NCBI GenBank assembly: GCA_038496445.1
Contig: JALMLS010000279.1
Span: 84,903-148,902, forward strand
Length of the DNA: 64,000 nt
From: Trichosphaerium sp. ATCC 40318
Lineage: Eukaryota; Protista; Tubulinea
Direction of reading: 5' to 3'
This document shows, piece by piece, positions 11,597 to 64,000 of this stretch; positions within the stretch are counted from its first letter, which is position 1, and each line of letters opens with the position of its first letter. The notes under the pieces were generated by a model, which searched no databases, had not been told where the DNA came from, and saw only the letters and a program-made list of their open reading frames with translations. The position numbers were made by a program, and so were the translations under genes.

Positions 11597-11614
11597 TTTT
11601 CACAAAAGCACACG

Positions 11615-21600: not shown

Positions 21601-22406
21601 AGAAGGATTACATGACATCAAACTGCTTTTTTTAGAGAGTGGTACTGTTAGCACTTTCTATTATCAATGGTTTGATATGCAACTAAGAGCGCCTTCTCTT
21701 CCTTTACACTCAGGAAACGCACCAGATCAAATACGAGCTGTTGACTTTGTTGGTTTCCTTGACGATTCCCTTGGTTCACAAAGCACGTGTTTTTTAAAAG
21801 AACTGAATTTATGTCTTTTCAAGTGATGATATTTCTTTGATACAAATCCAACGCACCACCTTTTTTGTTTTTGAACTTGACACTTTTTTACGATAACTTG
21901 TCTTGAAAACAACATTATCAAACACATTCCGTAAGATACTCGCTAGAATTTAAATTAATTATAACGTTATTCACAAGATTTTAAAAACTAATGACATTAT
22001 AGAGCCAATTGATGAAGACTTATGTGGCCGCGAGTACTATTACAACACATTTCATTTACATGCGAACCTACCTGATATTGTTCCAACAAACCTTGATGCT
22101 GATGGTCTCTGTGCTATTGCTCACATAAACAACCTTGAATACGTAGAATATATTGTAAACACAGACACAGCAGGTGTATACACATTCGAATTGAACTATG
22201 CCAGAGGGATATCGGGAAGTGATACTGTGGACATAGTTGTTGATTCAGTAACCATGGCAACATTTACTGTTTCTGGAACAGGTGGTTGGTATTCGTACAC
22301 TACAAGTAGTATATCGCTTGGGTCTCTTTCAGTAGGGGATCATGATATTAAGCTTGAGTTTAATGGAAGACTTAACTACAGATGGTTCAAGTTAGAACTA
22401 GTTTAA
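18681..22406 (+). CDS. Secreted M12/reprolysin-like zinc metalloprotease with three CBM6-like modules (copy B)
   Basis: Same exon structure as copy A and near-identical exons; HE|IGHLIGSQHT at ~20005-20090; ends NYRWFKLELV*. Confidence 0.85.
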
Positions 22407-22570
22407 AAAACTGTTCATCTGAGGATTTGGTTCAACGTTTTTTTTGATATTTGATGGCTTGTTAACATGTTTGTTTTGATAAAGAATAAATATGTCATCA
22501 TTTGAAGAAATTAATAGTTTACTCAGTATTTTGCGTTACATACAATTTTTATCAGGGTTAATGTTTTTAT

Positions 22571-29343: not shown

Positions 29344-29927
29344 TTGTGACACTGTAGTTGCTCAACAAAGAATGTAGTTTGACTTTTATTAGCATGGAGC
29401 TTACAAGAAAAGGTGCGAATTAGAGTTTAACGGCAGTAGTGAACCAAAGAGAGCATCATGAATGCGCCGAATATTATCCAGATGAAGCTTGTATTGTGTT
29501 TTTATTTTATGTTTCATTTTTATCACGTGATTGTTTGAAGAGACCTTTTCTAATGCTCCCAACCAATAAAAACGAAACTCAAAAAAGAGAATCCAAAACG
29601 CTTTCTTTGCAATTACGTGGCTATTATCCAAAGGAAAAATAAAAAGTACGTATGCGCCCAAGACGATCATTTCAATCACATACAGGGAACAGCTTGAAGG
29701 TTATCATAAACACAACTCCAAACTATCACGTGACATTCAACTTGAGAGTATGAGTACCAAAGACAGTGATTGCTTTACAACCACAGCCCAACATTGCCTG
29801 TTACGGTAATAGTACTTCACGCATAAGACGAAAAATTACTGTAGGCTTTTGTGACATGAAATTTTATTTATTTCTTCTTGTGAGCAGAAACTATCAAACA
29901 ACACAATATGTTATCAATTCCATACAA

Positions 29928-30046
29928 TAGAAGAGAGATGGAAAGCATTTAGTTTTATCCACCTAAGACACATTAGACCGTAGGATTTCACAAACTGAAA
30001 CTTACCTTTATCTGGATAGAATTAAATCGCTTTTATCTCTCTTCTA
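29928..30046. repeat. Imperfect inverted repeat (hairpin) downstream of the cassette gene, copy 1
   Basis: TAGAAGAGAGATGGAAAGCATTTAGTTTTATCCA ... TGGATAGAATTAAATCGCTTTTATCTCTCTTCTA. Confidence 0.75.
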
Positions 30047-30099
30047 GTTGTAAGTGATCGATTTGTTTTCTAGAGGATTGCAAGAAAACAAGATAGTCC

Positions 30100-31627
30100 C
30101 TACAAGAACTTTAAAGCGTTTTATGCTTTGAAGTTGTATCACAAGAATTAGCCCAATCATCAACATCTTGGTCATTAATCGGCGTATCTTCCATGAGTGT
30201 ATCTCGAATGGAATTGGAGCGTGCTACACCATTGTCTGTGATCTTTTTCAAAGTTAGAAGAAGAAAGGCAACGAAAAAAAATTGTACATATCACTTACCG
30301 CATTGGATGGAGTACTGCGCTCGGGCGTTGGGTCACTGCTATGCACAGTACCCAATTTTGGGGAATTATGGCAAGTGCTTGCGTCGTGATTATAGATTGC
30401 GCCAGTGTTTGCGTCACAGTGTTCTTTGCTGCCAATAACCTCTTGTTTTTTGTTTCTCTTGAGTTTAGCAATTTCTTTTTTTAACCTCTTATTCTCTTGT
30501 TTTAAACTCTTATTCTCTTGTTCCAATCTGTCTAGTTTATCTTCAGTTGAGAATGAAGGATCCCTTTCATGGCTGTATTCCCGTGGAGTATTATTCTTTG
30601 ACATAACAGTGATACTACGAGGCTTTTTGAACGATAATCTACATATAAAGTAAGAAATTCACACGTGAAACTACAACATAAAAAACTGATATTCTGTACG
30701 CACTCATACACTTTATCGTTTTCGTGACAAAGGCGCTCCTTTTCTTCATCTGATAAGAACACGTGGATCTTGCCTTCCTCAAATAGCTTTCTCCAATATT
30801 TTGATATGCAGTTCAGCTTGCCTCCCATGTATAGCATATAAAACTCAAACAACGTAGCTATGTGATCACCACAAGTTTTTTCACTACGATTTAGAATTAG
30901 TTGGTGTTCAAAGAGTTTTATACGCACTTTAAAGTTAAACTATCTCCTAAGTCCCACTTTGCTTTACTTTTCCTATTGGGAGATTCGTCATGATACCATT
31001 CCAGCCAATTGCTTACTCCATCTGGTCTAACAGATTTCATTACCTTGTAGAGAGGCCACAACCGCTCTATACAAGTGCGAAGTCCTTTTTTGGTGCTAGG
31101 CCCTCGATAGAACCCAACCGGGATCGTTGTAGAGCACGTCCTACACTTTGAAGTGATCAGGACGTAAGAAGTTTCTTTTGGTCTATTGTTTAAACGTTAG
31201 GGTTCAGCGTATGAAGGGTATGACAATACGTACTGTCTTGCTGAAAGAGCTTCAGCAATATTTATCTTTCCGTCATTGTTTACTGCTAAACGCTGTTCAT
31301 AGCCAACCGGCTTTCGTTGTTTCTACGACATCAGGAATTAAAAATTGGCCAATAAACAAAAACTTGTACGTTTAGGTGTTGACACGTGACAAAGTCAACT
31401 GGTTCTCCATTAGACAATTTAACTGTAACATTTAAAGGTCCAAGCTTCCCTGTCTCCGTCTAAAAGTTTATTAGGATTATCCAGATAAGCTGTTGTTGTA
31501 CCTTATCTAATAGCTTACAAAGCAGAATATCCGGTGTTAGTTTAATGCCAAGAGGCGCTTTGTGCCGTTTCGCGTTTCTTGGGATGTTATCGTCAGTCAG
31601 AACCCTTTTTCTAGTTTCAGGGTTCAT
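30100..31627 (-). CDS. Unknown protein (NLS-like N-terminus, CxxC, coiled coil), cassette copy 1
   Basis: Exons splice in frame: MNPETRKRVLTDDNIPRNAKRHK, FVTCQHLN|KQRKP, SKCRTCSTT, NWLEWYHDESP, LEQENKSLKQENKRLKKEIAKLK; stop at 30100. Confidence 0.7.
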
Positions 31628-31959
31628 TTCGTCTGCAGCACTCAATGCGAAAGAAGTTTAATATTATTTGCTGTAACATTAAGCCAGGAACTCACGAAAA
31701 AGGCTCGCAGAGTAACCGTGACTTATGTGCTATCGATTAAGGACTCTTTGGAATTTTGACTTCAAATACTAGGTTTTTTTTCAACTGGGAGAAACCCGAA
31801 TTTCTTTGCTCTTTTTGTCACTCACTTCGTAACAAGCACGTTCAAAAAATTAAGCAGCATTGCCAAGAAACTAAAGTACGTTTATTTTATGCATTTGGTT
31901 ACCACACTTTTCATTTAAAAACGTGCCAAGTTCATATTTATTTATTACGAGATGATAGG

Positions 31960-32315
31960 GCTGACTTTAAAAAATATCTTTCAACTGCTTATTCTATTCG
32001 CAGCATGAAGGAAAATGTACATGAAAGCTTGTCAAAGCCTTCATACAATTGATCTTAGTTTTACTAAAGTGAGAGATGAAGCCATTAAAGCTTTAGCTGG
32101 AACTCATACAATTAATCTTAGTTTTACTAAAGTTACAGACGAAGGCATCAAAATTGGCTGGCGTTCATACCATAAATCTTAGTAGAACTCGAGTGACAGA
32201 TAAAGGTCTCAATGTGTTGGCTGGCGTTCACACCATTTACCTTTATGAAACTCAAGTGACATATGAAGGCAGAAAAGAATTGCATGGAGTTCGTACATTT
32301 AAACTTTCATGTTAG
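31960..32315 (+). pseudogene. Truncated, frameshifted intronless LRR relic ('AGVHTI' family)
   Basis: HTIDLSFTKVRDEAIKALAGTHTINLSFTKVTDEGIK, frameshift near 32150, then LAGVHTINLSRTRVTDKGLNVLAGVHTIYLYET. Confidence 0.75.
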
Positions 32316-35209: not shown

Positions 35210-38200
35210 GCAGGGATGAGAAATTCTACTGAATCTGGAGCAAAATCCACTTGAGTAGATTTTGATACAGTTACCCCAAACACGCCACTACACTGTAAAT
35301 AAAAATTTTGTTGGCTCATAGCCAAACAAAGTAACATGAGACGCAAGTTAGGAAAAGTAGTTAAGATTTATTTGTCAAATTTTTTTTTTTTGTATTTTTC
35401 CGCTACGCTACAAAGTCTATTGATGCTCTATTGTGATGCGGAGCTAGCATTAGTTGACCTATTCTGAGACTAAACACCAGGTGCTTTTGTTGAACTTGAC
35501 AGCAGAACTCGTCCTATCACCCCAGTCTACAATGACCATCAAAGATTTTGGCCAAAATCGTGAAGTGCGAATTACAGTGATGTTGTAGCAGATGCCTTCG
35601 TACAAAATATTCCAACAAGATCCAGATGTTACCTTGTTGATGATTGGCGCCATTACAAAGGCATCAGGTGCTACTACATTACTTCTTGTGTTGTAGGACT
35701 TGAGAAAACAATTAATACTTCAAAAAAAATAGAAAAATTAAATTCACGAAAATACATACACGAGATAAGTTTGGCTTGTTGTCTTCAAGTGGTACAACAT
35801 GTGTTGCCATAGGTATGACAGCATGAGGTGGTATTATTGGTTCTACAACATCTGTTGGCGGTTCCTAAAAATAAGTAAATTTGTGAGAAACAAAAAAAGA
35901 GAAAACATACCTCAGCTTCATTATCGCTGTCCAAGTTTAAACTTAACGCTCTCTCTGAAATCCAGGTCATTATTGAGTCATCACTCAACGAGATCACTGG
36001 AGAGCCATTAATACACAAATCCATGCTTTGAATAGAAGATGGGCTTCGTGTTGATGCTGGACTCAACAAAGACATTGGGCTGTTTGTTGTTGGAAAAGAA
36101 ATACTAGAACTGTTGCTTTTAGGTGAATCACCAATAGACGCCAAACTAAACACGTTATTAATCAGAAAAAATCAAAAAAAAAAAAAGAAAAGAGGTGTAC
36201 TCAAGAGATGCAAATGGAGCGAACGATTCTCCAGAGGCAGTAGGTGCAATAGCAAATGCATTGCATCTATTAACAGTTAGTTGAGATGTTGTAATTGGTG
36301 TTCGTACACAGAGCCACTAAAAAAAAATTAATACACAAAAATTAAAACAAAAGTAAACGTACGTTGAACTTTGACTTTGCGACTCACTTTCGTCATCACT
36401 AGAATACAAAATACGAGCTGGTCTTCTAGATTTCTTGACTGGTCGTTTTTTTGCGCGTAATTTGGCCACAGGTGCAACATCCGCTTCTTCTAAAAAAAAA
36501 TAAAATAAAATAATTAAAAAAACCAAATACTTACCATGAATAGAAGAAATAGTGCCTTCTTCACGTATGTCTCTGGTATTTAGGCCCATCACAAACAATT
36601 TAGCAGCAATGATATGTTTGCATATTTTGCCAAGCTGCACAAAATAGAAACAACCACACTTTTCATCAATAATGTCCACTGGATATTTTAAACCTAAAAG
36701 ATGTGTTAATACTTACAAAAACATGTCAAAAACTAACCTTGAGTTGTAGCGGATTCAACCATAAAAAACCGATCTTCACCAGTTTGAGGTTCCAAAGCTT
36801 GTACACTGTCAGCGAGTACAAGAGCGCGAGCACGTGCATCCAGTTCTTCTCTCTTTCGCAGCGCCTTTGATTTTGGGATTATGTTGCTGTCTGTCGCTTC
36901 GATGTCACGTTGTACAACCAAGTGCTGCTGCAATATCGCAGGCATTATGCGCAAACACTTGGCAAGTCCAAAACGATAGCCACCAAAGCCTATGTACACG
37001 AAAGTCAACAAACTTGCCATAACAATGACCAAAAAGAACTAAAAAGAAACCAAAGATGCTTTGTACAATTCTCCGAAGAATACTCAATGGAGAATAGCTA
37101 CATGAAGAATACTCAATGTGTAGACAATACGAGCAATGTTGATTTAAAAAAAAGGAAAAAAAAAACCACGTGATAAAGTGTAAACGTACCGTATACCTTA
37201 ATAAACTGTCTCCATTGTGTCTCCACTTTGTTGTTCGTATTCCAGAGACCGATACGGCACAAACGACCATAATCAGTCCAAGAATCAACCCAAGTGGCAG
37301 AAAACCTACGTATGGATTAAAGGTACGTAATATAAACAAAAAAAAACCAAAAACTATTAAAACGTACCAGTTTTTCTTGAAGTATAAGTACAGTTGGTTT
37401 GCAGGAGATATCTTTTTACCTGCTCCATCAGTGGTCCAATTGTTTGAGTTTGAGATGCACCATCTCAAAAAATCACTTTTCAATTGGTTTAAGTGTTTTT
37501 TGGATGTCGCACGCTCTAACTTGATAAGCTGGTCCATAGCACTGGTAAAATGGTTAGCGGCATTGTGTTGTGAAAAAAAAATCACAACACAAAAATCTCC
37601 CCAAACCCCAAAAAAACCGTACGCGTTCTGATGCTCTACCCTGAACAACTCACGTATCTTTTGACGCCATGTGGAGTGATAGTGGTATTGGCATAAGATG
37701 TAGCGAAAGCCGACGCGCACTATAGCGGCCCTTTCAGCTGGATCTTTGTCTATCATCACTACCGGACTCCAAACGTGTACATGCGCGACTAGGTAAGTAA
37801 GGCATTAAGTTGTGATTTTATTTTATTTTCTAAAACTTACCTCTTATACTTTCAATGCGTCTCTTTACCACAGTAAGAAACGCTGTGATGTTCTCTTCAT
37901 GGGAAGAAGAAGCAATACACAGAAAAGCCAAGAAACCGCGACCAGTAGTTACATCTTCACATACCAAACCCCACACGGGGTATTTATTACTAAAGGTACG
38001 AATTAGTAATACATTTTCAGAAAAAACCCCAATTTTGTTTTTTAATTTTTCTTTTTCAACCAAACGCATTTTACGCCAAAAAAAAAACCAAAAAATTTAA
38101 ACCACGTGTTTTCGTACCAATTCAATTTGTACACTGAATCTAACCCCACTATTTCAGACCCATAGCGCGCAAGGATGGATAAGGACTCTGTGGTTGCGAA

Positions 38201-39272
38201 TACAACCACAAAGTTTCCTTTACCATCTTTGGCTACAGGAAAGTTTTCTTTGTGCTTGGGGTATAAAATGAATGGTGCCATGGATTTGTCTGACAAAAAC
38301 GCATTCACCTCATCTATTGTGGTGACCGTACTTAAAAAAAAATTAATGTAAATAAAAATTATTTTCTGATATTGTTTTTTTTTGTACCTCGTTGTTGTTA
38401 TATTGGCTCTGCCCCAAGTAGCAACCATTTGGCGTGAGATCCGCCAATTTGTTGCTTGCACCATAGTCATGAGGCCTTCGTTTACCAAATCTCGCTTTAT
38501 TTTTGGAATAGTGTTGCATACGAAAGAACCAGCGTTTAGGTTACCAAAAAGATTGGTGACTCCAAACTCATCTTCTTCCATAGCACGCAACCGACACTAA
38601 AATAGGTAAGTAGTAAAAAATAAAAGTAAGTACAGAAAAAAAAAAGACGTACAAGTACTTTAAACTGTACTTTAGTTAAAGGTGAACCAGGAACCATTCC
38701 AGGACTGTGTGAACCTTCAATGTACACAACAGCCGTGTGCTGGTTCGCACAGTAAATGATGATGGTTACCTTTACAGTGCAGGTTTTTGGTTCACAGCCA
38801 TTTTTTAAAGCGCAGCACAGGCGCTCCTTGCACAAAAACCTGTCGGAGAGAGAATTTGCAGCAGGTACCTCATAAAAATCTCGGTACCTCTCTCCAACAA
38901 ATCGCGGATTGGAGAACTGTGGTCCTCCAGGTGCTGGTATTTTTCTGGTGCCTGGTCCAGCGCGAACACCGTATGGTTTCTTGTTAACCGTGCCGTACAG
39001 AACCGGTTCCAGTTGACACTAAACGCTTGTTAGGATTCACTAATTAGATAAAATCTCGTACTCGAAGTATGCCAAGAGTAGGCCGAAGAAAAAAGTCAGG
39101 GAGGTCACCAACCTCCACTTCGTGTGTTAGCATTGGTTGTTGTATTTGTGATTGGGTTTTGGGCTAAAAACAACGAAATCTAAGATATTTTTAGCAACCC
39201 AAAACCAAGAAATGCACGAGAATCCACTGATGTGGATTCTCGTGCACATTTAGTAGAATTTTAGTCGTCTGC
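35210..39272 (-). mobile_element. Mutator-like (MULE) DNA transposon, 4063 bp, with degenerate TIRs and a 9-bp TSD
   Basis: TSD GTTCAAGGT at 35201-35209 and 39273-39281. TIRs: left GCAGGGATGAGAAATTCTACTGAATCTGGAGCAAAATCCAC; right (reverse complement) GCAGACGACTAAAATTCTACTAAATGTGCACGAGAATCCAC. Encloses a transposase gene. Confidence 0.9.
35459..38990 (-). CDS. MULE transposase with N-terminal Cys/His region, DDE domain and SWIM zinc finger (multi-exon; start codon unresolved)
   Basis: IVGLDSVYKLN (D1), MIDKDPAE (D2), ILCQYH (CxxH), NTNNKVE (E), SWIM KCGCFYFVQLGKICKHIIA, Ser-rich tail, final exon 35459-35700. Confidence 0.85.
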
Positions 39273-39330
39273 GTTCAAGGTAGTTGGGTTGGTGTTATAT
39301 ACCAGATAATGTGAAACAGTTGTACATTGT

Positions 39331-40410
39331 TTACTGAAAGTCAAATCTCATTTTATAGCTTCTTGTTATTACTTTTACATTTCTTTCTTTAAGCGACTTT
39401 ATACATTCTCCAGAAATTTTATGTAGATTTCCTTCCAACCATATTTCACGTAATCTAGATAATCCTTTAATACCTTTATCTGTTATGTCATTACAAGAAG
39501 TAATGTCTAACACTTCAACATTTGAAAGTGGAACAAGCCAATCATTTGTTGCTGTTGTGTACGACAGATCAATGGTGTGTGCACTTGCAAGGTATTTCAT
39601 GCATGTCCCAGAAATACCACAGCGAGTTAAGTTGATATTTTTTACACCCACAAGCATAGCAATGTAATCATCTGTTACATTTGTTTCATATAAATCAATG
39701 GTATGCACACCTGCTATACTACCAAAAGATTTACCAGTGATACCTTTACACTGGCTCAAATTGATATTATGTACACCTGAAAGTGGTAAAAGCCAATCAT
39801 CTGTTACATTTGTTTGTGATAAATCAATTGTGTGTACGCCTGCAAGGTATTTCATACATGATCCTGTGATTGCCTTGCAACACAAAAGGTCTATGTTCTT
39901 AACACCTGCCAATGCTGAAACACCCTTATCAGTGACGCTTGTTTGATACAAATTTATGGTATGTACACCAACTAAGGCTGAAATACCTTTATCCGTTACG
40001 GAGGTTCGTTCTAAACCAATGGTATGTACACCAGCTAATGTTGAAATACCCACATCTGTAATGCAGCTACAATACCCCAACTTAATGGTATGTACACCAA
40101 CCAGTTCTGAAATACCTTTATCTGTGACTGAGGTGGCAAATAAATTTATATTGTGTAGCCCAGATAACATAGTCAACGCATCATCTGTAACTTTACAGTT
40201 TGACAGGTTTATACTTGGTATTCCAGCAAGTGTTTTAAAGCCAACATCTGTAAGGTGCTTCATCTCGCTTAAGTTAATATAATCGAGGTGTTTAGATTCT
40301 GGCAGATAGGCAAATTCTTTTTGCAATATCCACCCAAAGTCCAACGCTCGTACACACAAAGCTCCTTGTTTTGTGAACCCTGCATACACTACATATGTTT
40401 TACATCCCAA
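39331..40410 (-). CDS. Intronless leucine-rich repeat protein (~13 repeats of LAGVHTIxLxxTxVTDxG)
   Basis: 359-codon open frame with 22-24 aa LRRs. The track start is TTG, so the true N-terminus is uncertain. Confidence 0.8.
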   Translation of the reverse strand: MGCKTYVVYAGFTKQGALCVRALDFGWILQKEFAYLPESKHLDYINLSEMKHLTDVGFKTLAGIPSINLSNCKVTDDALTMLSGLHNINLFATSVTDKGISELVGVHTIKLGYCSCITDVGISTLAGVHTIGLERTSVTDKGISALVGVHTINLYQTSVTDKGVSALAGVKNIDLLCCKAITGSCMKYLAGVHTIDLSQTNVTDDWLLPLSGVHNINLSQCKGITGKSFGSIAGVHTIDLYETNVTDDYIAMLVGVKNINLTRCGISGTCMKYLASAHTIDLSYTTATNDWLVPLSNVEVLDITSCNDITDKGIKGLSRLREIWLEGNLHKISGECIKSLKERNVKVITRSYKMRFDFQ

Positions 40411-50869: not shown

Positions 50870-51455
50870 TAAATTTACGTAAGAAACTTTTTTATCAGTT
50901 GCTATAAGAGTTTACATTTGTTTTTGGACATGCTCTAAAGTACAGCCACTATACGAACTGATATGTACAATCTCATGTAACTAATCCACAAACAAGAAAT
51001 ACACCATGTAAATACTCAACTGTACAGGTCAGAAATGTGCAACCTCAGAATGTTCTTCAGTTGAACACTTGAAAAAAAAAGACCCATACAGGCGAACCTG
51101 TAAAGCAAAACCGGATGTGAGAATAAATTACTAATGGATCTGGAATATAACCGGAGCAAGTTTTCTTTAACAATTTTGTCTTATTTAAATAAACTATTGT
51201 GGGAAACATAAAAACATGTTGTTAGCATTAGTAACCTCAAAAGAATACTTATGTGATTTCGTTCTTTTTTTTTTCACAAAAGCAGAAAACTAACTGTTTT
51301 TTGACGACCAACAACTCATTGAAAGGTTGAATTTGAACAGAAGCTGTATTTTTTACCATAGTGAGTGAGTTTATAAGTCGTTGTCAGTTGTAAACTTGAC
51401 AAACAAGTATGAAATTTAGGAATATATGTACAATGTCTATCTGTAAACTTTTGCT

Positions 51456-52766
51456 TTAAAACACTAACCCAATGATAGAAATTAGCACAACCATAAATGT
51501 GCTTGTAGTCTAGGAAAGAAGTAAGCGAAGATACGAGTAAATTGTTTGTTTAACGTACAAGAGAAGACGCAGCTGACAAGTTTCCAGAATCAGGTGCTAG
51601 CGTAGATCCACTTGTAGGTGCGATAGTGGTACCCATCGTAGGCGCTACAACTCCTATTGTAGGTGACGCTGTCATGGTAGGAGAATCATTTGGTGCTTCA
51701 GGAGTAGTGTTTGAAGAAGTACAATACCCGGAATCAATAGGTAAACCATTTGGAAATGAAATAGAAGCAGAAAACCCAGGCAAAACACCAGAAATAGCAG
51801 TACCCGTGCAGGTAGTTAGGCCTCCTCTGATGTTATATGGAGTGTTATCTGAGCTGTCAATACATCCTTTGAGACACATTGGCACAAATGGGAAAAATTC
51901 TGGTGTTGGAAGCGGATCAACAGGTGTAGTGCAGTCGTCCTCGCTGCTAGCTTTGTGATATTGTCCCATCATATAGTAACGATAAACGTAGTCATCTATA
52001 GCACCGGTATCATCAAAGTAACCACCACATTCGTCAGCGCATACAGTGGCACCAGCAGTACTGAGAGAGCATTTCTTCATCATAACACCTCCTGGCCCAC
52101 GTGGCCCATACACCGGAAATCCATCTAAGGCGTATCCAAGAAGTGGTGAGTGATCTGTCTCGGTTTGATTTAGTTGAGCCATTAAACACGATGGAGGGAT
52201 ATGAGAATGATAAGAACCAACGCCTTAAAAAAAAGAAACTTAGACAAAAGATTAAAAAAAAGAAGAGCGAACATACCTTGTGCTGCATGACAACCGCATT
52301 CATCAAACGTGTCACCTTCTACAGCTGCAGCTGTAGTATCATAGTCAATAGCAGCAGTCTTACCTCCGTAGGAAGACCACAACATAGCATTACTGAAGAG
52401 CATTCCAATAGCACCAGGATGATCGCTTAAATCTTGGTTTACAGCTGGATCATACTTTGGTGTTTTAGGTATTACAAAGGTAGTGTTTCCAAACGAAGCC
52501 GGGTTCGGATTAATCCTTGTGTACTTATGGTTTGGGCAATGGTTTGTTGATATTGTTCTCGCTCCAGTGTTAGAATCGAAGTACTCACGGTAGTAGTAAT
52601 CAGTGCCGTCTGTAGCACAAGGAATGATTTCTGCTGTAGGCGGTTCGTTCATTGTTGGCCTTTGACAGCTACATAGTGCAACAAGTGCTTAAAACGCATT
52701 AGTATGCGAATAACATTGATTTCCTTGCAATATACCTGTTAATAGTATGAACGTTTTAGTATCCAT
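51456..52766 (-). CDS. Secreted or surface YHYH-domain protein with S/T/P stalk and hydrophobic C-terminus
   Basis: Signal peptide; ISTNHCPNH; GAIG...N; FDECGCH..|..YHSH..P; HSPLLGYALDGFPVYGP; ADECGG; YRYY; FPFVP.CLKG; C-terminus TTSTFMVVLISIIGLVF*. Confidence 0.8.
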
Positions 52767-53848
52767 TCTATAAGAGTTGTGTTGATATGTGTTTGCGTAT
52801 TGAGAAACTTTCTATTTTGATAAGTTTCAATAAATTGCTTAGTTTGTAACGCTATATTTTGTCCGAAACCTGCGGACACAATAAAAGCTGATTTCTCTTG
52901 GTTTAACCACTATAACCCCCTAGGTAGCATGTTACAAGTAAGAGGAATAGTGTAACGGCCATTCCTAGAGCAACAAACTTATTCGCTTCCCGTTAGCTAC
53001 ATACGCGCCCACTACATTTTAGTAGCGGATAGAAGCAATTACAAGTAGTTTTGTAGTTTTATTTTGTTTGGCTTCTACTGTATTGTGGCAATAGTCGGTG
53101 TTAGTGTAAAACATGGCGTATGCCGCTGGTATCGGTACATACTTGCCGAAAAGTTCGGACCGAAACTTGTGTACTAAACCTATACCTAACTGAGGCTCAT
53201 CGTTTTCCAGGCTATCTAGAGATGTTAATGCAATTACCACTGAGAGTTGTTTGGACGCTTGTAAAGCAAACTGTTAAAATGCCCGCAACTTGCCTCGTAA
53301 AATGTGTACAATAAAACGGAAAGTGACGTAACGATCGATCCGTCAATTGTTGTACACAGCCTTCTAAGTAGTTTGGTATACCAAAGAAACATCCACGTTC
53401 ACCCACATAACATATTGTCATTGAGTGACTTGATTTAAATTTCTTTGATGAGTCTTGTTGAAGCAAACTCACCAAAGTAAACAAAGCACCAAAATTGTTT
53501 CAAATACACGTACATTTCTTATTAACACGTGCAGGCTATGTTTGCTATTATTCTTTGTAGTATAGCTCTTGGAGGTATCTACAGGCTACTGGAGGCGTAA
53601 GGCAATTCGAAAAAGGTAACCACGTGCACAGGAATACGCATTTGGTTTATGGCGCAACAGCCAGACCAACTCCTCTTCACCAAGTACTTTCCAACAAAAC
53701 CACACAGTATTCTCTACGCATAGAGTACTTCTCTAGCTTCTTTTGCAACAAACAGTTAGATTTGGGCAGAGACCCGATTTGGCTGGAAAATTGTCTGTAC
53801 TTTTCTTGCCAAAATTAGTGCTAATATTACGTTAGAATTGCTTCGCTG

Positions 53849-56146
53849 ATGCAACTTCACCGCGCATTGTTAGTTGCGACATGCATCGCCCTCACACTAG
53901 CCGCTGTAGCTTTACCAAAGGCTAATAGCGATAGAAGCTTCGTAGAAACCCACAAGCCAAAGAAAGTTGATCTCGGTACGCTTTTGTGAGGTTTTGAAGA
54001 TTAGTAACGTTTTTTAGGCTGGTCTTTCCACGCCCACGCTGATTTTAGCCAAAAACGCAAGTTTATCCTTGCGGTACAACAACAAAACGGAGATGAGCTC
54101 GAAAGCATCTTTTGGTACGTTTTTTTTGCTTGTGCGTCAAAACAAACCCGCGCAATCTCAGCAACCACCACTCGCTCTAACTAATCATTAGGGAAGTTAC
54201 CAACCCTCAACACCCAAACTATGCTAAATACTTATCCATCGATGATTTGACCAATCTCCTTGCTCCTACTGATAGCGACCTCTTCGTTGCTGTCAACTTC
54301 TTACGTAAAAACGGTATCTTTGAGTACTCTCTAACCAAGAACCGCGATTTCATTTCATTCGAAACAACCCTCGAACACGCTCGTGAGCTCTTTGAGGCTG
54401 AGTTCCATACATTCAAACATGCTGATAGCGGTCGCACTTATGTCACCTCTCTTGGCCCTTACACACTACCAACAGAGGTTGCTGGTGTTATTGACTTCGT
54501 TGCTGGTATTACTGGGTAAGTATGACTCCTACAAATTGATTTTGAAGTGAGATATTAACTGTTTTGTTTATCATTAGATTTCCATTAATGAAAAAATCAA
54601 TGCTCACCAAGCAAAGAAAGTTTGGAGCATATGAACTTGGTCCTAAGGATCTCATCCGTCGTTACAACGTAACAATGACTGGTGGTAAAGCTAAAGGAAA
54701 CGCTCAATCTGTAGCTGAATTCCAAGTACGTCAAGAGAGACTAAACACTCGCCAAACGCATGTACAAGTACTCATTTTTGTTTAGGGTCAATACTACAGT
54801 CCAGCTGATTTGAAAACATTCTTCAAACAATTTCAAAAGGAATACACAGACTACGATACTGTAACAAAGGTAGTAGGCCAAAATATTGGTTCCTCACCAG
54901 GTCCAGAAGCTACTCTTGATATCCAATACATTATGGGTGTTGCACCTAAAGTACCAACATGGTTCTGGAGGTTAGTTGTGCGAATCTGATTTTTTTATTT
55001 TTATTTCCGTCTCTACTCAACAAAACTGTCTTTTGACGCTTTCTTAGTAACCCTCAAATGGACTTCTGGGGTGATATCACTGCTTGGTTATCTCAAATGG
55101 ATGATGAAGCAAACAATCCTCTAGTACACTCTGTAAGTTACGGTTTACAAGGAAACTATCCTTCTAAGGCATACCGTGCACGTATCAACACTGGATTCAA
55201 GAAACTTGGTGTTCGTGGTATTTCCATCATCTTCGCTTCAGGAGATTCCGGTACTGGTTGCAACCTTTGCTATTACTTCGAACCTAGCTTCCCAGGCACG
55301 TTTTATCCGATTACTACCTCCTACTGACTTATTATTTAGCTACTTCTCCTTATGTAACATCTGTTGGTGCTACTAGATTCTTGTACGATCATGTCGGACC
55401 AGAGGGTGCCGTAGAAGCATTCGGTATGTAAATTTTTTTTGCGATTGGCTCTTTTTTGTTTTCTGATTTTTTTTATTTGTTAGGCTCTGGTGGTGGTTTC
55501 TCTTGGGACTTTACAACTGCTCAGTACCAAGCTACTGCTGTTAAGAATTTTTTTGCTACTGCAAAGAACCTTCCAAGCGCTCACTACTACAACGCTGCTG
55601 TACGTCAATTTTCATGACTTTTGACCACTAGTTGTGGCTAGTTTACAATCACGTGTACTTATCTTTTATTCTTCTTAAGGGACGCGGTACTCCTGATGTT
55701 GGTGCTATGGGTATTGGATTTAGTATTATCCTCAACGGGGATACAAACAGGTTCGTAGTTGATTAAAAAGAATCATTTATAAAAAAGCTTCTAACTTTGC
55801 ATGTTTATAGCATTGGTGGTACATCTGCCTCCGCTCCAACATTTGCTGGTATTGTATCTCTTCTTAACGAAGCACAACTACTTGCTGGAAAGCCTCCACT
55901 TGGTTTCTTGAACAACTGGATCTACCAAGTACGCTAAAACAAACACAAAACAATTTAAAAACCATCCAACTAATATTTTTCTTCTAGACTGCCGCTGCTC
56001 ATCCTGATGCATTTTTCGATGTAACCAAAGGTAACAACCGTCATGGTTGCTGTGGACTTGATGGATTCATCTGCCAACCTGGTTGGGACCCTGTAACAGG
56101 TGTTGGTACACCAAACTTTGGTGTATTGAAGACACTTTTGCCTTAA
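53849..56146 (+). CDS. S53 sedolisin-family peptidase (TPP1/physarolisin-like) with pro-domain
   Basis: Signal peptide; EATLDIQY; SVSYG; FASGDSG; FP|[12 protein letters not shown]; GSGGGFS; RGTPDV; [12 protein letters not shown]; FDVTKGNN; [13 protein letters not shown]. Confidence 0.94.
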
Positions 56147-56659
56147 AAAGCCAAACAATTACATAGCCATTTCGTTTTGTCATAGACAAAAAACAATAGT
56201 TTTATTTTAAAGGACGTAGTCCACATTATGTGATAACTGAACGCATAAAATAAACGCACTGAGTTCTTGGCAATGCTGCTTGATTTATTTGAAGGCTTGT
56301 TACCAAGTGAGTGACAAAAAGAGCAAAGAACATTCGTTTCAAAAAAACCTCGCTAGCAGTACAAGCGCAGGTTATGCTCAACTGTACAATCTACTCTATT
56401 TATTGAAACAAGTGCCTAAAGAACTAATAGAGAACTGAGAGAAAACTGACACCATTTAAACAAAAGTAAAGATAAGGAATTTCTTCTTCTTTGTTCGATG
56501 AAGCAATGTACCTTGTTGTACGAACAAGGATTTAAAGATTGGAAGCGATGAGTCCCATTTGTTGAATTTTTACTCTGAGAGCCTTTTTCGTAAGTTCCTG
56601 GCTTAATGTTCCAGCAAATAATATTAAACTTCGCATTGAGTGCTGCACGTGACGTAGAA

Positions 56660-58248
56660 ATGAAAACTGGTAGAAAGAGGGTTCTGACTGACGATAACAT
56701 CCCAAGAAACGCGAAACGGCACAAAGCGCCTCTTGGCATTAAACTAACACCGGATATTCTGCTTTGTAAGGTTTTAGACAAGGTACAACAAAACCATATC
56801 TAGATAAGCCTAATAAACTTTTAGACAGACAAAGGGAAGCTTGTACCTTTAAATGTTATGGTTAAATTATCTAATGGAAAACCGGTTGGCTTTGTCACGT
56901 GTCGACACCTAAACGTACAAGTTTTTTGTGAAAACAAAAAGCCAATAAATAATTCTTACTGTCGTAGAAACACGGAGAGCCGGTTGGCAATGAACAGTGT
57001 TTAGCAGTAAACAATGACGGAAAGATAAATATTGCTGAAGCTCTTTCAGCAAGACAGTACGTATTGTCATACCCTTCGTACGCTGAAACCTAACGTGTAA
57101 ACAATAGACCAAAAGAAATTTCTTACGTCCTGATCACTTCAAAGTGTAGGACGTGCTCTACAATGATCCCAGTTGGGTTCTATCGAGGGCCTAGCACCAA
57201 AAAAGGACTTCGCACTTGTATACGCCGGTTATGGCCTCTCTACAAGGTAATGAAATCGTGGCCAAATTAGTCTCACAGGTTTTTTAGAAATCTGTTAGAC
57301 CAGAAGATATTCCTGGTGGAGTACGCAATTGGCTGGAATGGTATCATGATGAATCTCCCTATAAGAAAAGTAAAGCAAAGTGGGACTTAGGAGATAGTTT
57401 AACTTTAAAGTGCGTATAAAACTCTTTGAACACCAATAAAGTAATTCTAAATTGTAGTGAAAAAACTTGCAGTGATGACATTGCTACGTTGTTTGAGTTT
57501 TATATGCTATACATTGGAGGCAAGAACTGCATATCAACATTTTGGAGAAATCTATTTGAGGAAGGCAAAATCCACGTGTTTTTATCAGATGAAGAAAAGC
57601 AGCGCCTTTGTCGTGAAAACGATAGAGTCTTTGAGTGCGCACAAAGACTACCATTTTTTTTGTGGAAGTAAATCACTTGCTAATTTCTGACTTTTCTATT
57701 TAGATTATTGTTAAAAAAGCCTCGTTATATTACTGTTACGTCAAAGAATAGTACAAAACAGGAATACAGCCATGACTATGAGCCTTCATTCTCAACTGAA
57801 GATGAACTAGAAGAGCTTAAACGAACCCATGCAATACTACTAAACCACACCGACATAGTGGAGAAAGAGAATGCGAGGCTTAAAAAAGAAATTGCCACAC
57901 TCAAAAATGTTGCAAAACAATCTATGATTGGCAGCAATGAACAGCGTGACGCAACCACCTGCAACCCGACCAAAACTCAAAACTTCGACAGTTTGAATAA
58001 TGCCACAATATTACCTGCCACTGATGGCACAAGGTTAGAAATCAGCGCTCCATTCAATAGGGTAGGAGAATACAATTTTTTGCGTTAGTTTTCTTTCTTT
58101 CTAACTTTTGAAAAAGACCTCACAAGATAATGAAGTAGCAAACGTCAATTCTAGTATTGGTCTTACTCCACCTGGATACACCCCTGGACTTGAACCGTTA
58201 TTTCCCTACATGGAATCTGTGACGAACTTTAATGCAAACACGCTTTAA
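56660..58248 (+). CDS. Unknown protein (NLS-like N-terminus, CxxC, coiled coil), cassette copy 2
   Basis: Eight exons splice in frame from MKTGRKRVLTDDNIPRNAKRHK through SKCRTCSTMIPVGFYRGP, GVRNWLEWYHDESP and LFEFYMLY to ...NFNANTL*. Confidence 0.72.
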
Positions 58249-58319
58249 AGTTCTTGTAGGGACTATAGCTGCGCTTGTTTTCTTGCAATAAGCTTGAAGA
58301 CAAATCGATCACTCACAAC

Positions 58320-58517
58320 TAGAAGAGAGATAAAAGCGTTTTAATTCTGACCACCTAAGGTACGTTCCTTGACCGTAGCCAATTCCTAACTCAGCCACAT
58401 GTCCATGTGGCACTACTCTGGTAGTAACTGGCTGAGTTAGGAATTGGCTGAAATCCTGTGGGTCAACTGGAACGTACCTTAGGTGGTCAGAATTAAAACG
58501 CTTTTATCTCTCTTCTA
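58320..58517. repeat. 198-nt nested fold-back: perfect 49-bp outer stem and perfect 21-bp inner stem
   Basis: 58320-58368 is the exact reverse complement of 58469-58517; 58377-58397 is the exact reverse complement of 58429-58449. Confidence 0.95.
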
Positions 58518-59343
58518 TTGTATGGCATTGATAACATAATATTATGTTGTGCTTCGATAGTTCCGCTCACAAGAAGAGCCTAAAAATAAATAAATAGTAT
58601 ATCACTTAAAACCTTGTTTCTCGTTTGAACAACAAATCAGTAACAGTTTCTAGAAAAATTCTGGGTCCATTTTCGTACTTTACGCTCCTTGTAGCGCAAC
58701 ATAAAAAAGTCGAATACCTATTATATAAGTATTGTTTGAAACAGTGAAGTTTTAAAATATTGTAATTTTCACTATTTCAGTTTCCCATACCATCTCTAGT
58801 GCTTTTAGCTCATTGAAAACTCTACCGCGTACAGTTTGCGTAGTAAAATTTGCGATTATTCTTCCTCAATTGAAACTTACATTGAAAATTTTGTTATCAC
58901 TAAGGTGCGTAAGTCATACTATGAAGGATAGCATTGTCACGCATATAGTTCACATTGCTATATATCTACACCATTTGCAGAAGTGTCAGATCTTGCTAGA
59001 TCTGCTAAACCAAAGTTACAATAAAAACTAAGTCACTTTTTTTCCCTTAAGTGACGCAATGAACTATGTAAGTGGCTATTGAATGAATGCAATCAAATAG
59101 AACGATAACAACAGTAGTTACATACATAACATAAGGAAGAAGGAGAACGCAAGCGTAGTATGCCAGAACTGGCAATTCTTGCCATATCTGCTAAAAATGG
59201 TAAAAAGCACAATCTAACATACTTGACTGATACAAAAATAAAATGCGATTCTGGTACGGACAATAATAACACGTGTTAGTTTATTTATGAAGTCGCAGCC
59301 ATTAAACTCCATCATTTCTCAGATATCCTTTGGTTGTCTGACG

Positions 59344-59916
59344 TTATAACGTATCACGCTGATCTGTATGACATGTTTGTAGGGCGTCCCTACATTCTTG
59401 AAGATCTTCTCCATTTTCGTTACAATCATTGTACTCTTTAGTACAAGTATGTGGTAGTGCAGGGTCTGAGGTATGATGTGGTGTTGATTTTGAGTCAGAG
59501 TCTTTTTGGCAATCTTTAAAATCACGTAAACATTGGTTTCTCCCATCAACTGTACTTGATTTAAAACACGCTTGGAAGTTGTGTCGGCATTTGACGAACC
59601 AGTTGATATCTGAGTCTTCAGATGTTACCACATCGTTTGGTTGATATGTCAGCGTATCTGTAGGCTTATCTGTTTGGTCTTGGCTACAAGCTACAATGCA
59701 CATGTTGCGAATTGTTTTTCTTTGCGTACTAGAAGCACCAGAAGCAAGGATAGCCATACAATCATCTATACAAGGAGTACTAGTTTCTCGGCACTACATT
59801 AAAGAGTAAATTCAACATTGGGTCCTATTTTCAATTGCTATTGTTACCGTACGAAAGAATACAACGCAAGTAAGGATAATACCAATGAAAGAAAGTACTA
59901 GCGATAACTGATTCAT
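59344..59916 (-). CDS. Small secreted Cys-rich protein with repeated Cx6C helical-hairpin-like units
   Basis: Signal peptide MNQLSLVLSFIGIILTCVVFF, one intron, then CIDDC..CIVAC, CRHNFQAC..CLRDFKDC, CTKEYNDC..CRDALQTC. Confidence 0.7.
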
Positions 59917-62900
59917 AGGTTTTCAGTTCTATATAACGTTGTCTCCCCACCACAGACTAAGTGAATACAAAGTGAGGTCTTAATGTTGTAAAACAGGTTT
60001 TTAAGCTTGTCGTGCACGCGCCAGTCTGAGAAAATGTCCATTGTGAATTGGCTTCGTAAATGCATTCAACCACAACAGCGAAAGACACACTTATATAAAC
60101 TAGACTAACCAACAACCCCCAAAAAGGTGGCGTGAAAATCACGTGTTTAAGCGAGATTTTCCAACTTTCAAAAAATACGACGTGGCGTGATTTGAATAAT
60201 ATTTCTCCGCTCGGGTATGAAACTATCTTTCAGTGTTTGTGCGTCAATAGCCCATGTATCAGTCGTAGGTACGTTTTTTGGTGGCGTTTTAGTTTTTTTG
60301 CCCAATTGCTTTTATGTTCACGCGTCAACGTACAAGGCTAATATTTAATCATTAGATAATAGAATAATTTTTTTGTAGCTTTATCTTCAGTATATTTAAT
60401 TCGCTTCTGTGTAGTCTGAGACTGAGATTTTTTTTTCCCAAATGAAGTATTTCGAGCGAACTAGAATTTATTTTTAGACGGATGTCTAGCCTGTTGCTAC
60501 CTGAAAATGTTTGTATCACTTCACTAGATTTCACGTTATGTTATTGTAATACTACAAAAAAAGGGCACGCTAGACACAGCCGCATTCTCCTACTGTTGGT
60601 ATTGTAGCGCCAGTTTTTCCTTTGGTACTTCCATTGTGAGTTGAACCTACTTCGCTGTATGTGAACCAACCAACATTTTATTGGCGCTTTGCGTCAACAC
60701 GTGATTTGAAAAACTTAAGACTATGCACAGCATGGAACTTCTAGCTGCATTAACCTGATATCGGGTTTTTGCTGAATGACACAATGTGGAGAGAAAAGAT
60801 CAATATCCTTACCAGCAAAAGCTACACCATGTAATCATTATAGACCGAGCTAAAAAACCGATTTAAACGCCCAACAAGTTATTATCTTTGCTTGTGTACA
60901 TACAAACGAAACAATGGGTCAGTTTGTTCTTTCCCTGTTGTCTTCTTATTAATACTCATCTGGTAGGATAGAATTGGCTATTTAACAGAGTGAAGATATT
61001 TCTTGCTGATCAAACAAGTGTTCTTCTGAAGGTAGAAACCTTTCGTATGCTGTAAGGACGTACCCCTTGTAAAGTTTGTGAGTGTACTCCAACCAACACT
61101 TGTTCTGGCTTGTGGTTTGATGTGGAACTACTCTTGCTTGCCCAGCAGGCCAAGAATGTGAAAATCTGTACGGATCAACCAAAACCTTTCGGTCGTTTTC
61201 GATTAGCACAAATCGTATTAGACCTGACCCACTCACACCTAGGAATGCGATGAACTTGTACAACAAGAAATATCTACTGTGGTGGTGTTACTGAATGTCT
61301 CGGATATGTTTGTGGTGCTTTTGTAAGCGGCGAAATGTGTTCAAACTTGCCAATGTGTCACATGAAGGATTACGCTCAAGCAACATGTGATCTTTCTGGA
61401 TCATCTCCACAATGAAATGTGTAATTGAAAACGAAGGAGATGGGAAAGAGACTGCAAACCAAATACATATCAATGAGAGGCTGTTGTTTAAACTTCTCAG
61501 CCGCTAATTGGGCCAGTTTTGCAGTTACATGTTCGTTACTTTTTAGAAATTTAAAAACTTAGATTTATTGAACCACATTATTAAGCAGTACAGATACAAA
61601 CTCGTTTGTAGACAAAAATAAAGAGAAACTTCCCAAAAAGTGCTATCAAGAATTCTATTGATTTCGAACGCAAGGATTAATTAACTTTCTTATTTTGACG
61701 AATGCTTATAGTGGTCAAGGTTATGCTATCGTAAACGAATTTTTACTGAAGAGTTACCGCTTGAGTTTGTTGGCATTGCTGCCATAGCTGTAGTTGACAA
61801 AGAAAGGAGATGTCATTTGATTTAAGCTGTGATTTCTTTATATTATAGGCAGGCGCTAGGCCTGTACCCTCTTTAGTTTTTTACAAAGAGAGCAAGAGAC
61901 GTTCAACATGCCTATGCATTCGAACAACTTCCATTGACCCAATGTTCGCGGCTAAAAAAATAGAACGTCTCTCAGTTCTTGGGTGACCGTGAAGTCATAT
62001 TTCAAAGAAGTTACTTTTAATCTCTACAAACAGTTTAATGTACACTTGTTTTGATAAAAAAAGTATGGAACATACATCTCAAGTTATCTTGTAATCATAT
62101 ATTCATTGAGGTGTTTATTGGGCATTTAAAACGGCAGATTTTGTTGACATGTATCATCCTTAATTTTTGTCAGTTTTCTATCACCCAGAAATATTTTCCT
62201 GTTCCCTATTGATCCTCCTTACCTCCCTTTCAGGTGCACCCTTACGTATCTTCAGACACGTTTGTAAGTCTACATTCGTTTGATTTCATGCAAAAACGCT
62301 TTGAAAGTTCTGAATGATAAGAAACAGCTTTCGAACTGTTTTTCACTGAATGTACTCACTTCACAGCGCTGTCTTTGCTTTAAACTTCTCTGGGTTTATA
62401 TAAAAGCTACCTGAGAAGGTTTTATAACAAAGACACTGACTACGCAAGGACTACACGTGACCCAAATTGTTATAAGCTAAACGACATGAACAGGCAAATG
62501 AAAATAAACATCGGTTTAGCAATAATTTGTAATTCGAAACGAGAGTCCATTACTAGAAATTCATTGGGTCTATTATGCTTTACCAACTTCAAAACAAAAG
62601 TCTGGGCATGTCTGAGTAAAACTCTAAGGGTGCTAAATACCTTGGAGAATCACTAATTGAATACATGAACCCCTACCCTCGTTCATTCCTTTACATGAAC
62701 TTGTTTTATGTCCTACCGTACTTGTTTGAAATCCAAGTCTACTCCCTCAACTCATTAAAGTATGTCTGAACTCTTTTATTACAAGATACAAACACCATTG
62801 AACTTTTCTTAGTGTATGAACGAAGCAACTGAATGAACAATCCGCTAACTTTTTCGCATAAGTTCGTACAACGTGTTACAGAGTTTATGCTCCCCTACCA

Positions 62901-63061
62901 GCAGTAAATAATTGCCAACAATATACTAATATATACACGTGACGCTTTTATTTTTGAGAATTTAACAAACAAGAAATAAAGGAAGGAGTAGATGCTTGTA
63001 CAATTGTTCTAATTTACTGTTCTTTTTTTTTTTTACGGTTTTTTTTTTTGCTTGTTTTGAC

Positions 63062-63850
63062 TTACGAGAGGTATGATGTCAATTGTATTAACTGGTTCAT
63101 ATTAATAGTTATCCAACCACTTCTATTCTTGTCATTATACTCAAACATTGATCTACAGTGTGCAATATGCGCCGCAAACTAGATAAAAGTGTTAAAACAG
63201 AAAGCGAGAAAAAAACGAGAATGGCACTGTCAGCTGAATGTTCCAAAAATAACCTTACCATTAAGAATTCATTCCAAGATAATCCTGTACGAGATGTATC
63301 ATATTTATGAAGTAATTCAAGAGTAGTATCAAGCGTAACAAATCCAAAACCAGCCTACAAAAAAAAAATTAACAAAAAACACAGAAAAACACTCAAAACT
63401 TGACATGTCATCAATTTCTTTGAATACAATCCAGCACAAAACACGTGTATAGAAAAAAATAAAATTCTGGTTTTCTTACAAAGTGGATTTGGAAGAAACA
63501 GGCTGTCTATGACCAAAGACTGTAAAGAAAAAAAAACAAATAAAACTCACATTGTTCAAAGCGGAATGAATCTCTCTTGCTTCAATCCTACCGGAACGAT
63601 CCGCATCCGCTGTAATAAAGGCTGTACGCATCCTGTTTATGAATTGATGCATAGAAGCATACTCCTACAAGTTGCATAAGCAAACGAACGCGCAAGAACA
63701 ACTGTTCCGTAAGAAAAGCACTGTGTTTTTACAACACGTACTGGAAAGTCTATTGCACCATTTCTATCCTTGTCAAATACTTTAACGAGCTTTGCAGCAG
63801 CTACAGTACCAAGCTGAACGCCATTGAACGTAACTAAAAGCGTTAACAAG
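63062..63850 (-). CDS. Penta-EF-hand Ca2+-binding protein (ALG-2/peflin-like), 5' part not resolved or outside the window
   Basis: FDKDRNGAIDFP|EY, ADADRSGRIEAREI, YDTSRTGLSWNEF, NDKNRSGWITINMNQ; stop at 63062. Confidence 0.85.
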
Positions 63851-64000
63851 GGTTTACAATGGCGGTTAAGTCAAAAAAGGCAATACTGGTTTGTTTGAGT
63901 TTGAAGTAACGAAACCAGTTATCAATGTGGGTTTTTAGGGCGTTTGATGAAATACGCGGACAAATAGCTTGTTTGATTTATATTTTACCTTGTTGTAGTT

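Follow-up and report, generated by a model that had tools for sequence, protein, structure and literature searches.

The amoeba Trichosphaerium sp. ATCC 40318 carries a small family of genes, most of which have a long fold-back just after the stop codon. We describe this family from a stretch of 64,000 nucleotides (hereafter the window), positions 84,903 to 148,902 of contig JALMLS010000279.1. The window is the end of that contig (C154), which stops exactly at window position 64000; the genome assembly comprises 70 Mb in 642 contigs, with ~38% G+C and short GT-AG introns of 40-80 nt. The family has five loci: copies A and B, which lie in the window in opposite orientation, and three paralogs on other contigs (C75, C38 and C28). 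Four of the five (A, B, C75 and C28) have the long fold-back. The A/B pair itself is no mobile element; it arose by ordinary inverted duplication of a gene and has undergone gene conversion. The best explanation of the whole is a non-mobile, old duplicate within an orphan family, whose proteins would combine a nuclear localization signal (NLS)-like motif with a leucine zipper and whose genes would have inherited a double-stranded RNA (dsRNA) element acting in cis from the 3' untranslated region (UTR). Taken with all its parts, this explanation stands at about an even balance in our judgement.

The fold-back of copy A, which contains a perfect palindrome (Table 1), compares with -53.7 +/- 4.4 kcal/mol for shuffles of the same sequence, and that of copy B is shorter and degenerate relative to it. 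The hairpin of C75 is an imperfect stem of ~45 bp that overlaps the end of the coding region, stop codon included (-58.8 kcal/mol, z = -10). C28 has two hairpins side by side, 15-180 nt past its stop codon, which together reach -116 kcal/mol over 301 nt (z = -9.6). The C75 and C28 hairpins are both unique in the genome. AATAAA is found 48-66 nt past the hairpin in A, B and C28. Since the hairpin lies between the stop codon and AATAAA, it is expected in the 3' UTR of the mRNA. Folds of this strength are rare in the background. With arms of 20 nt or more, complementarity of 80% or more and a loop of 120 nt or less as the criteria, the window has only two other inverted repeats. When ~110 kb was scanned with a sliding fold window, no more than two unrelated regions came to -50 kcal/mol or below per 130 nt. 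One of these regions, window positions 37541-39330, with 130-nt windows of -44 to -52 kcal/mol, is inside a Mutator-like element (MULE). The other, at 15261-15530 of contig C519, folds strongly on a single strand (-50 to -53 kcal/mol per 130 nt). A hairpin within ~100 nt or less of the stop codon in three independent lineages is far beyond chance (rough estimate below 1e-5), and its recurrence in the distant paralogs C75 and C28 makes it a family trait. Thus, the pairing of gene and hairpin, which the original prediction had recognized in A and B, is real and extends to distant paralogs. A search of Rfam with the hairpin gave only sub-threshold, generic microRNA (miRNA)-like matches.

The three paralogs were found in genome searches with single exons and with a profile of exons 4-5, which revealed nothing more; their gene models were made by hand. 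A basic RKRK/KRKR motif near the N-terminus is present at all five loci. The members also share the core motifs P[VI]GFxRGPxxGLxTC[IV]xxxWP, WLExYH and F..LY...K.....W, and a heptad leucine repeat is found in A, B, C75 and C38. A and B have a single CxxC motif each, which the paralogs lack. Intron positions vary among the members (exons 1-3 are fused in C38 and exons 1-2 in C28), as expected for an old family. The eight exons of copy A, placed by hand reading from GT-AG borders and frame continuity, encode a predicted protein of ~405 residues, and all exons of copy B stay open. The protein motifs that had been read from the letters alone, namely, GRKR-x10-AKRHK, TC[R/Q]HLN, CRTC, WLEWYHD, the heptad leucines and a divergent tail, were all recovered in the exon translations. 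The zipper in exon 7 has leucine or valine at every seventh residue over five heptads, and the residues before it are acidic (SFSTEDELEEL). Intron 6 could not be bounded with certainty: its donor, which follows GAG TGC, is GC in copy A and GT in B, in C28 and in a third copy on contig C519. Copy A also has an alternative GT donor at 57667/57668, 29 nt downstream of the GC donor, and an alternative acceptor for exon 7 at 57703/57704. In copy B, intron 4 was lost by a 35-nt genomic deletion between GAAATC direct repeats, which left six in-frame bases, and exon 5 has a 12-nt in-frame deletion. That both deletions keep the frame speaks for the introns as called and for selection on the reading frame.

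No known domain was detectable in the protein, in agreement with the first reading. Pfam, run on all eight exons one by one, gave coiled-coil noise only, including a weak HALZ match in exon 7 (E = 1.5e-4, 22.3 bits versus the Pfam cut-off of 28.1). A PHROGs scan of every exon likewise produced coiled-coil matches only, and the exon 4-5 profile, run against the sequences in PDB, returned nothing below E = 0.6. A word-index protein search with a 228-residue frame of the C519 copy gave no match, within a length window of 125-399 residues that may just miss a protein of ~405. Exhaustive profile search of 1.84 billion representative proteins yielded three very long proteins (2202, 2876 and 3619 residues), matched over short stretches. 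The best of them, a repeat-rich surface protein of 2202 residues in which a short LAGxLTC motif was matched many times, was judged spurious; since this one is repeat-rich and all three are very long with short matched stretches, all were treated as spurious. A scan of metagenome contigs gave 125 pattern matches, 0 of them confirmed, and the best score in the ESM Atlas, 0.78, was uninformative. Exons 4-5 of copy B (84 residues) are the only natural contiguous piece of the core. AlphaFold2 models this piece as a beta-hairpin, a helix and a beta-hairpin, with a predicted local distance difference test (pLDDT) score of 69, and Foldseek found no match for the model in PDB at E of 0.001 or below. 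Within reach of these searches, the family thus appears to be an orphan, found only in this genome and with no known domain. The NLS-like motif and the zipper are consistent with a nuclear, dimeric, transcription-factor-like protein. Membership in the bZIP or HD-Zip families was ruled out by the acidic stretch before the zipper, by the lack of a homeodomain or bZIP match among the exons and by a HALZ score below cut-off.

Copies A and B are 25 kb apart and inverted, as had been noticed at the outset. This is borne out by repeat blocks I1-I9, in which 29897-31715 is paired with 56570-58548 at 77-95% complementarity, and by pairwise alignment. Homology is continuous from ~56236/31895 to ~58580/29870 and takes in the upstream block, the introns and the 3' UTR. 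All the features that the copies had been said to share, that is, the upstream flank, introns, open reading frame and 3' fold-back, could be aligned, except that intron 4 is deleted in copy B. The unit of copy A starts ~90 nt after the stop of an upstream sedolisin-like gene, has an AATAAA in its upstream block, ~105 nt past that stop, and finishes at AATAAA hexamers. Copy B has the same layout, with AATAAA at 29872-29863, and so does the paralog C28. As it runs from an AATAAA-containing block to AATAAA hexamers, the duplicated unit is a whole transcription unit. The presence of an upstream block with AATAAA after the sedolisin-like gene suggests that locus A was the parent of the duplication. 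The sedolisin-like peptidase is a multi-exon gene at 54247-56146 (+), assigned by reading its C-terminal motif. On the side of copy B, a leucine-rich-repeat (LRR) gene with tandem units of 61-63 nt (..THTINLSFTKVTDEGIK.LAG..) lies at 31990-32300 (+); it is divergent from copy B, and the promoter region is therefore probably common to both.

Identity between A and B is patchy along the unit. It is 94-96% from exon 3 to intron 5, 88-93% in exons 1, 2 and 6, 70-72% in introns 2, 6 and 7, 68% in exon 7 and, at the DNA level, 54% in exon 8; it rises to 91% in the 73 nt that separate the stop from the hairpin. For exons 1-6, dS is 0.116 and dN/dS 0.55, versus 0.53 and 0.93 for exons 7-8. The third copy, on contig C519, is a mosaic. 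It is 99-100% identical to A up to ~57066, differs from both A and B between ~57066 and ~57760 (85-98% identity to A), and is 94-100% identical to B from ~57860 to 58700, through the hairpin and ~130 nt of the 3' flank of B. We read A and B as an old duplication that was probably overwritten by short gene-conversion tracts; one of these, B-like and apparently very recent, lies in the copy on C519.

The original prediction had proposed a DNA-mobilized element family or, alternatively, an expanding family of nuclear effectors. A DNA search of the 70-Mb genome with copy A matched only A, B and C519:5128-7394. Contig C519 (18.2 kb) is collinear with window positions 51096-58366 and 59006-64000 at ~95% identity, and the rest of C519 is 99.7% identical to the final 10 kb of contig C58 (C58:287800-297874), which it overlaps. 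Being inside a 13-18-kb block near-identical to locus A, the C519 copy is a haplotig or a recent block duplicate and does not represent an independent insertion site. That C519 might be an inversion isomer was ruled out, since on either side it is collinear with locus A. Within the 2.4 kb that C519 has in addition, there is a dispersed repeat of ~520 bp (C519 9360-9882) with more than 50 genome copies of 75-96% identity, which is absent from the corresponding window position. At the three contig ends that overlap here (C519 1-18218, C58 and C154), the assembly may have left a heterozygous bubble unresolved, or it may have been broken by a segmental duplication of recent date, possibly in inverted orientation.

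Neither terminal inverted repeats (TIRs) nor target-site duplications (TSDs) were found at the homology limits 56236/31895 and 58580/29870, and the TA flanking the hairpin on each side is part of the palindrome itself. Scans of each exon singly against Pfam and PHROGs revealed no transposase, recombinase, Rep/Hel or RuvC domain. A 28-nt pattern of the hairpin arm, searched with up to three mismatches, has no genome match outside the A, B and C519 copies, and the A-specific inner 113 nt of the hairpin has no other genome match either. An origin of the hairpins from miniature inverted-repeat transposable elements (MITEs) was ruled out because no hairpin, among A/B, C75 and C28, has other copies in the genome. 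Helitrons typically have a short 3' hairpin 10-12 nt before a CTRR end and insert between A and T. A Helitron was rejected here: the hairpin is 40-96 bp long, is followed by ~60 nt before homology ends at CACAAGAAGA, and has no CTRR. A TnpB/Fanzor OMEGA system was also rejected, no exon having an OrfB/TnpB-type Pfam match, and a retrogene is ruled out by the introns, six of seven being common to A and B and intron 4 of B having been lost in a genomic deletion. The earlier argument that retained introns exclude retroposition thus holds. The proposal of a mobile family does not, given two loci and one copy in a 13-kb near-identical block, the lack of TIRs and TSDs at the limits and hairpin arms that are absent elsewhere; nor does that of an expanding family, which totals five loci by profile search of the genome. 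The copy-number check recovered the B and C519 copies and no dispersed ones, and the ends of the shared unit proved to coincide with a promoter region and an AATAAA signal.

The sequence of the fold-backs offers some evidence on whether RNA or DNA is the relevant molecule. Sense folds are stronger than antisense folds in C75 (-70 versus -61 kcal/mol) and C28 (-42 versus -28 kcal/mol), where more G-U pairs form on the sense strand; the values are -144 versus -140 kcal/mol in A and -46 versus -55 kcal/mol in B. As B opposes C75 and C28, this strand evidence for an RNA role is weak. When the 49 positions of the perfect stem of copy A are compared with the arms of B, 31 are identical throughout, 3 differ on both sides, 11 of 49 equal only the left arm of B and 3 of 49 only the right arm. 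With left-only matches in excess, copy A seems to have acquired its right arm by recent copying of the left one. Covariation between the A and B arms as a sign of selection on RNA was ruled out by the same site counts, which are better explained by arm-to-arm homogenization. The perfect palindrome of copy A thus looks like the product of recent homogenization of the arms together with an inner insertion.

From these observations we would reconstruct the history as follows. A cellular gene, complete with its promoter and its poly(A) signal, was duplicated locally and in inverted orientation a long time ago, and the copies appear to keep exchanging sequence by patchy gene conversion. Each predicted protein has an N-terminal NLS-like motif and a core of ~200 residues, followed in four of the five by a zipper and then by a fast-changing tail. 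The fold-back would have been inherited from the ancestor of the family, would sit in the 3' UTR of the mRNA, and would most likely act there in cis as a dsRNA element, for instance as an RNase III-type cleavage site that limits the mRNA. Yeast Rnt1 is an RNase III with stem-loop targets in mRNAs. RNase III domains (PF00636, above cut-off) are encoded at no fewer than five loci of this genome, which also has a Piwi gene, and Drosha cleaves stem-loops in the 3' UTR of Ngn2, a transcription-factor mRNA, and in Dgcr8 mRNA (PMC3814725). Because of these genes and of the Drosha precedent, an element acting in cis is favored, and we hold with moderate confidence that the hairpin is a cis-acting dsRNA element, possibly an RNase III target. 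The duplication with its limits, the number of copies and their mosaic make-up, the family with its motifs and the return of the hairpin in paralogs are observed directly; nuclear localization, dimerization, transcription of the hairpin and any cleavage by RNase III are what we infer from sequence.

Several observations weigh against this reconstruction. C38 has only an 18-nt palindrome after its stop codon, C28 apparently lacks the zipper, and for C75 and C28 the stop codons were placed in gene models built by hand. The protein has no assigned fold, the sole model being the 84-residue piece with its pLDDT of 69, and the hairpin of B folds better antisense. Constraint between A and B is weak in exons 1-6 and near neutral in exons 7-8. 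The C519 copy has a frameshift in exon 1 (a 1-nt deletion) and has lost CRTC through a deletion of 6 nt; the copy may be dead, or the two deletions may stem from errors in the assembly.

The hairpins might have no function, if palindromes arise and decay at AT-rich 3' ends, by template switching or as fold-back relics, and recur among paralogs by coincidence or mutational bias. The perfect arms of copy A, which look like a recent copy of one arm, the decaying hairpins of B and C519, the lack of a strong hairpin in C38 and the better antisense fold of B all agree with such an origin. Against it stand the rarity of strong hairpins (about two unrelated regions per 110 kb), their presence close to the stop codon in three independent lineages, and the conservation of the pre-hairpin 3' UTR between A and B, which at 91% exceeds that of intron 7 (70%) and exon 8 (54%). 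We therefore regard absence of function as unlikely. The hairpin could also act at the level of DNA, as a break-prone palindrome that drives gene conversion and diversification of the tail, or it could be the binding site of the very protein encoded beside it, a cruciform or dsRNA target for self-recognition. Long perfect palindromes, such as that of copy A, tend to be break-prone; moreover, the most divergent exons (7-8) and the B-like tract of C519 adjoin the hairpin, and the protein core is possibly nucleic-acid-binding. However, the hairpins of the paralogs are imperfect and their G-U pairs favor sense RNA. As the 73 nt from stop to hairpin are so well conserved, there is also no simple divergence gradient around the palindrome. 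This possibility seems to us a poor prospect.

A family of pseudogenes, whose open reading frames are in decay or never had a function and for which neither protein nor hairpin is of importance, is improbable. It would fit the frameshifted C519 copy, a tail with dN/dS near 1, the lack of relatives among the 1.84 billion representative proteins and that of any transcript-derived family protein in the collections. The last point is uninformative, since a control, the neighboring YHYH-domain gene, is also without a protein from the same species in the collection. Eight exons are nevertheless open in A and B alike at dS 0.12-0.5, both deletions in copy B keep the frame, exons are better conserved than introns 2, 6 and 7, and paralogs at 30-50% identity retain the motifs. 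Mobilization of gene and hairpin together, by a DNA element or as its cargo, with the hairpin as an end or recognition structure as in Helitrons or IS200/IS605-type elements, is largely refuted, and we give it hardly any credence. Copies in opposite orientation do have promoter, gene and fold-back in common, but there are only two loci and one block duplicate, with no visible TIR or TSD at the limits and no transposase, Rep/Hel, recombinase or RuvC domain in any exon; the hairpin sequences are unique in the genome, and the distant paralogs are single-copy, with protein identities of only 30-50%.

A more ambitious version of the preferred reading, in which the hairpin is a cis-acting element inherited by an orphan family, can be put forward only tentatively. 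A lineage-restricted family of nuclear zipper proteins would have kept, in each gene and since the family arose, its own dsRNA element in the 3' UTR, serving either as a self-limiting module through RNase III or Dicer or as an RNA partner of the protein. The sequence of the element would be free to change and be renewed by arm-to-arm conversion, and its position would be kept. The A/B pair in itself is ordinary, and the value of the locus lies in a family-wide hairpin after the stop codon of orphan genes with an NLS-like motif and a zipper. If the hairpins are transcribed and processed, a whole gene family would have inherited a structural 3'-UTR element of self-control through deep divergence, and it would provide a clean natural setting in which to study how RNase III controls mRNAs in organisms other than animals and yeast. 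Gene conversion, both between inverted paralogs and inside a palindrome, also appears to be ongoing at this locus of an amoeba. A protein core without detectable relatives adds to the interest of the locus.

Table 1. Features of the two copies in the window and location of the three paralogs; whole codons are given where an exon does not consist of these only or where the stop codon is set apart.
Feature	Position	Strand	Basis or value
Copy A, whole duplicated unit: upstream region, 8-exon gene, hairpin-bearing 3' UTR, AATAAA	56236-58600	+	A-B homology limits
Upstream block common to A and B	56236-56330	+	pairwise alignment, per-feature identity; 86% identical
Exon 1, start codon and basic NLS-like motif (GRKRVLTDDNIPRNAKRHK)	56660-56782	+	translation
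Exon 2	56825-56914	+	GT-AG borders, frame continuity
Exon 3, ends in phase 2	56968-57056; whole codons 56968-57054 (+2)	+	translation
Exon 4, most conserved motif of the family, P[VI]GFxRGPxxGLxTC[IV]xxxWP	57108-57246; whole codons 57109-57246	+	own-genome matches, alignment
Intron 4 in copy A (deleted in copy B)	57247-57287	+	pairwise alignment
Exon 5, WLEWYH motif	57288-57409; whole codons 57288-57407 (+2)	+	translation
Exon 6, F..LY...K.....W helical block	57458-57638; whole codons 57459-57638	+	family alignment
Exon 7, leucine zipper and beginning of divergent tail	57720-58061	+	translation
Exon 8, stop TAA at 58246-58248	58117-58248; whole codons 58117-58245	+	translation
Copy A fold-back	58304-58537	+	-144.4 kcal/mol, z = -20.4
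Copy A outer perfect arms, 49/49	58320-58368 / 58469-58517	+	inverted-repeat search
Copy A inner A-specific perfect stem, 21/21	58377-58397 / 58429-58449	+	inverted-repeat search; unique in genome
Two overlapping AATAAA hexamers of copy A, at end of A-B homology	58585-58594	+	read from sequence
Copy B, same unit inverted, divergently placed beside LRR gene	29863-31895	-	repeat blocks, pairwise alignment
Copy B fold-back, 39-nt arms, 77% complementary	29928-30046	-	-46.4 kcal/mol, z = -4.8
Copy B intron 4 remnant, GTAATG = Val-Met in frame	31038-31043	-	alignment; open 84-codon translation across the site
Paralog C75	~100.4-102.0 kb of contig	-	exon/profile search
Paralog C38	~151.4-152.9 kb of contig	-	exon/profile search
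Paralog C28	~156.9-158.3 kb of contig	+	exon/profile search

Elsewhere in the window, the YHYH-domain protein is encoded by a two-exon gene at 51550-52652 (-). Its relatives carry PF14240; the best has 57% identity, and several come from algae and marine samples. Segments of ~4-5 kb at 11459-15742 and 18559-23658 form a tandem segmental duplication, with a spacing of ~7.07 kb and blocks that are 76-98% identical (families D1-D19). A further block pair, 18282-18424 / 24690-24832, has a spacing of 6.4 kb, and a direct repeat of 88 nt (family D18; 80% identity) is found at 39518-39605 and 39773-39860, spaced by 255 nt.

Among known systems, HD-Zip and bZIP factors resemble the family in having an NLS-like basic motif and heptad leucines after a putative binding domain, in line with the weak HALZ match. 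Unlike them, the family has neither a basic region before the zipper nor a homeodomain, its HALZ match is below cut-off and its core has no detectable relatives. In TnpB/Fanzor elements, the gene is directly followed by a structured RNA, and the present loci likewise combine an intron-bearing gene for an NLS-type protein with a structured, RNA-like element right after the stop. Here, however, no exon has a RuvC or zinc-ribbon domain, the core is too small, the predicted RNA is a plain hairpin, and there are neither transposon ends nor multiple copies. The palindrome arms of sex chromosomes are inverted segmental duplicates homogenized by gene conversion. The same pattern is found on a small scale (2.3 kb), and over an old baseline divergence, in inverted paralogs 25 kb apart with patchwork identity, in a third copy that joins A-like and B-like parts, and in the apparently homogenized arms of the copy A hairpin itself. 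The precursors of hairpin RNAs (hpRNAs) and miRNAs are similar in that a long near-perfect inverted repeat would be a substrate for Dicer, and Piwi and RNase III genes are present here. They differ in that the hairpin is embedded in the 3' UTR of a coding gene and has no Rfam match above threshold; its arms match nowhere else in the genome, so that, unlike those precursors, it has no trans target. The last group for comparison is mRNA stem-loops cleaved by RNase III, such as those of Ngn2, Dgcr8 and the targets of yeast Rnt1. The stems described here are much longer (40-96 pairs) and are inherited across a family of paralogs. They share with this group a stable stem-loop in the predicted mRNA of a transcription-factor-like gene, in a genome that encodes RNase III domains, and the Ngn2 loop, too, lies in a 3' UTR (PMC3814725).

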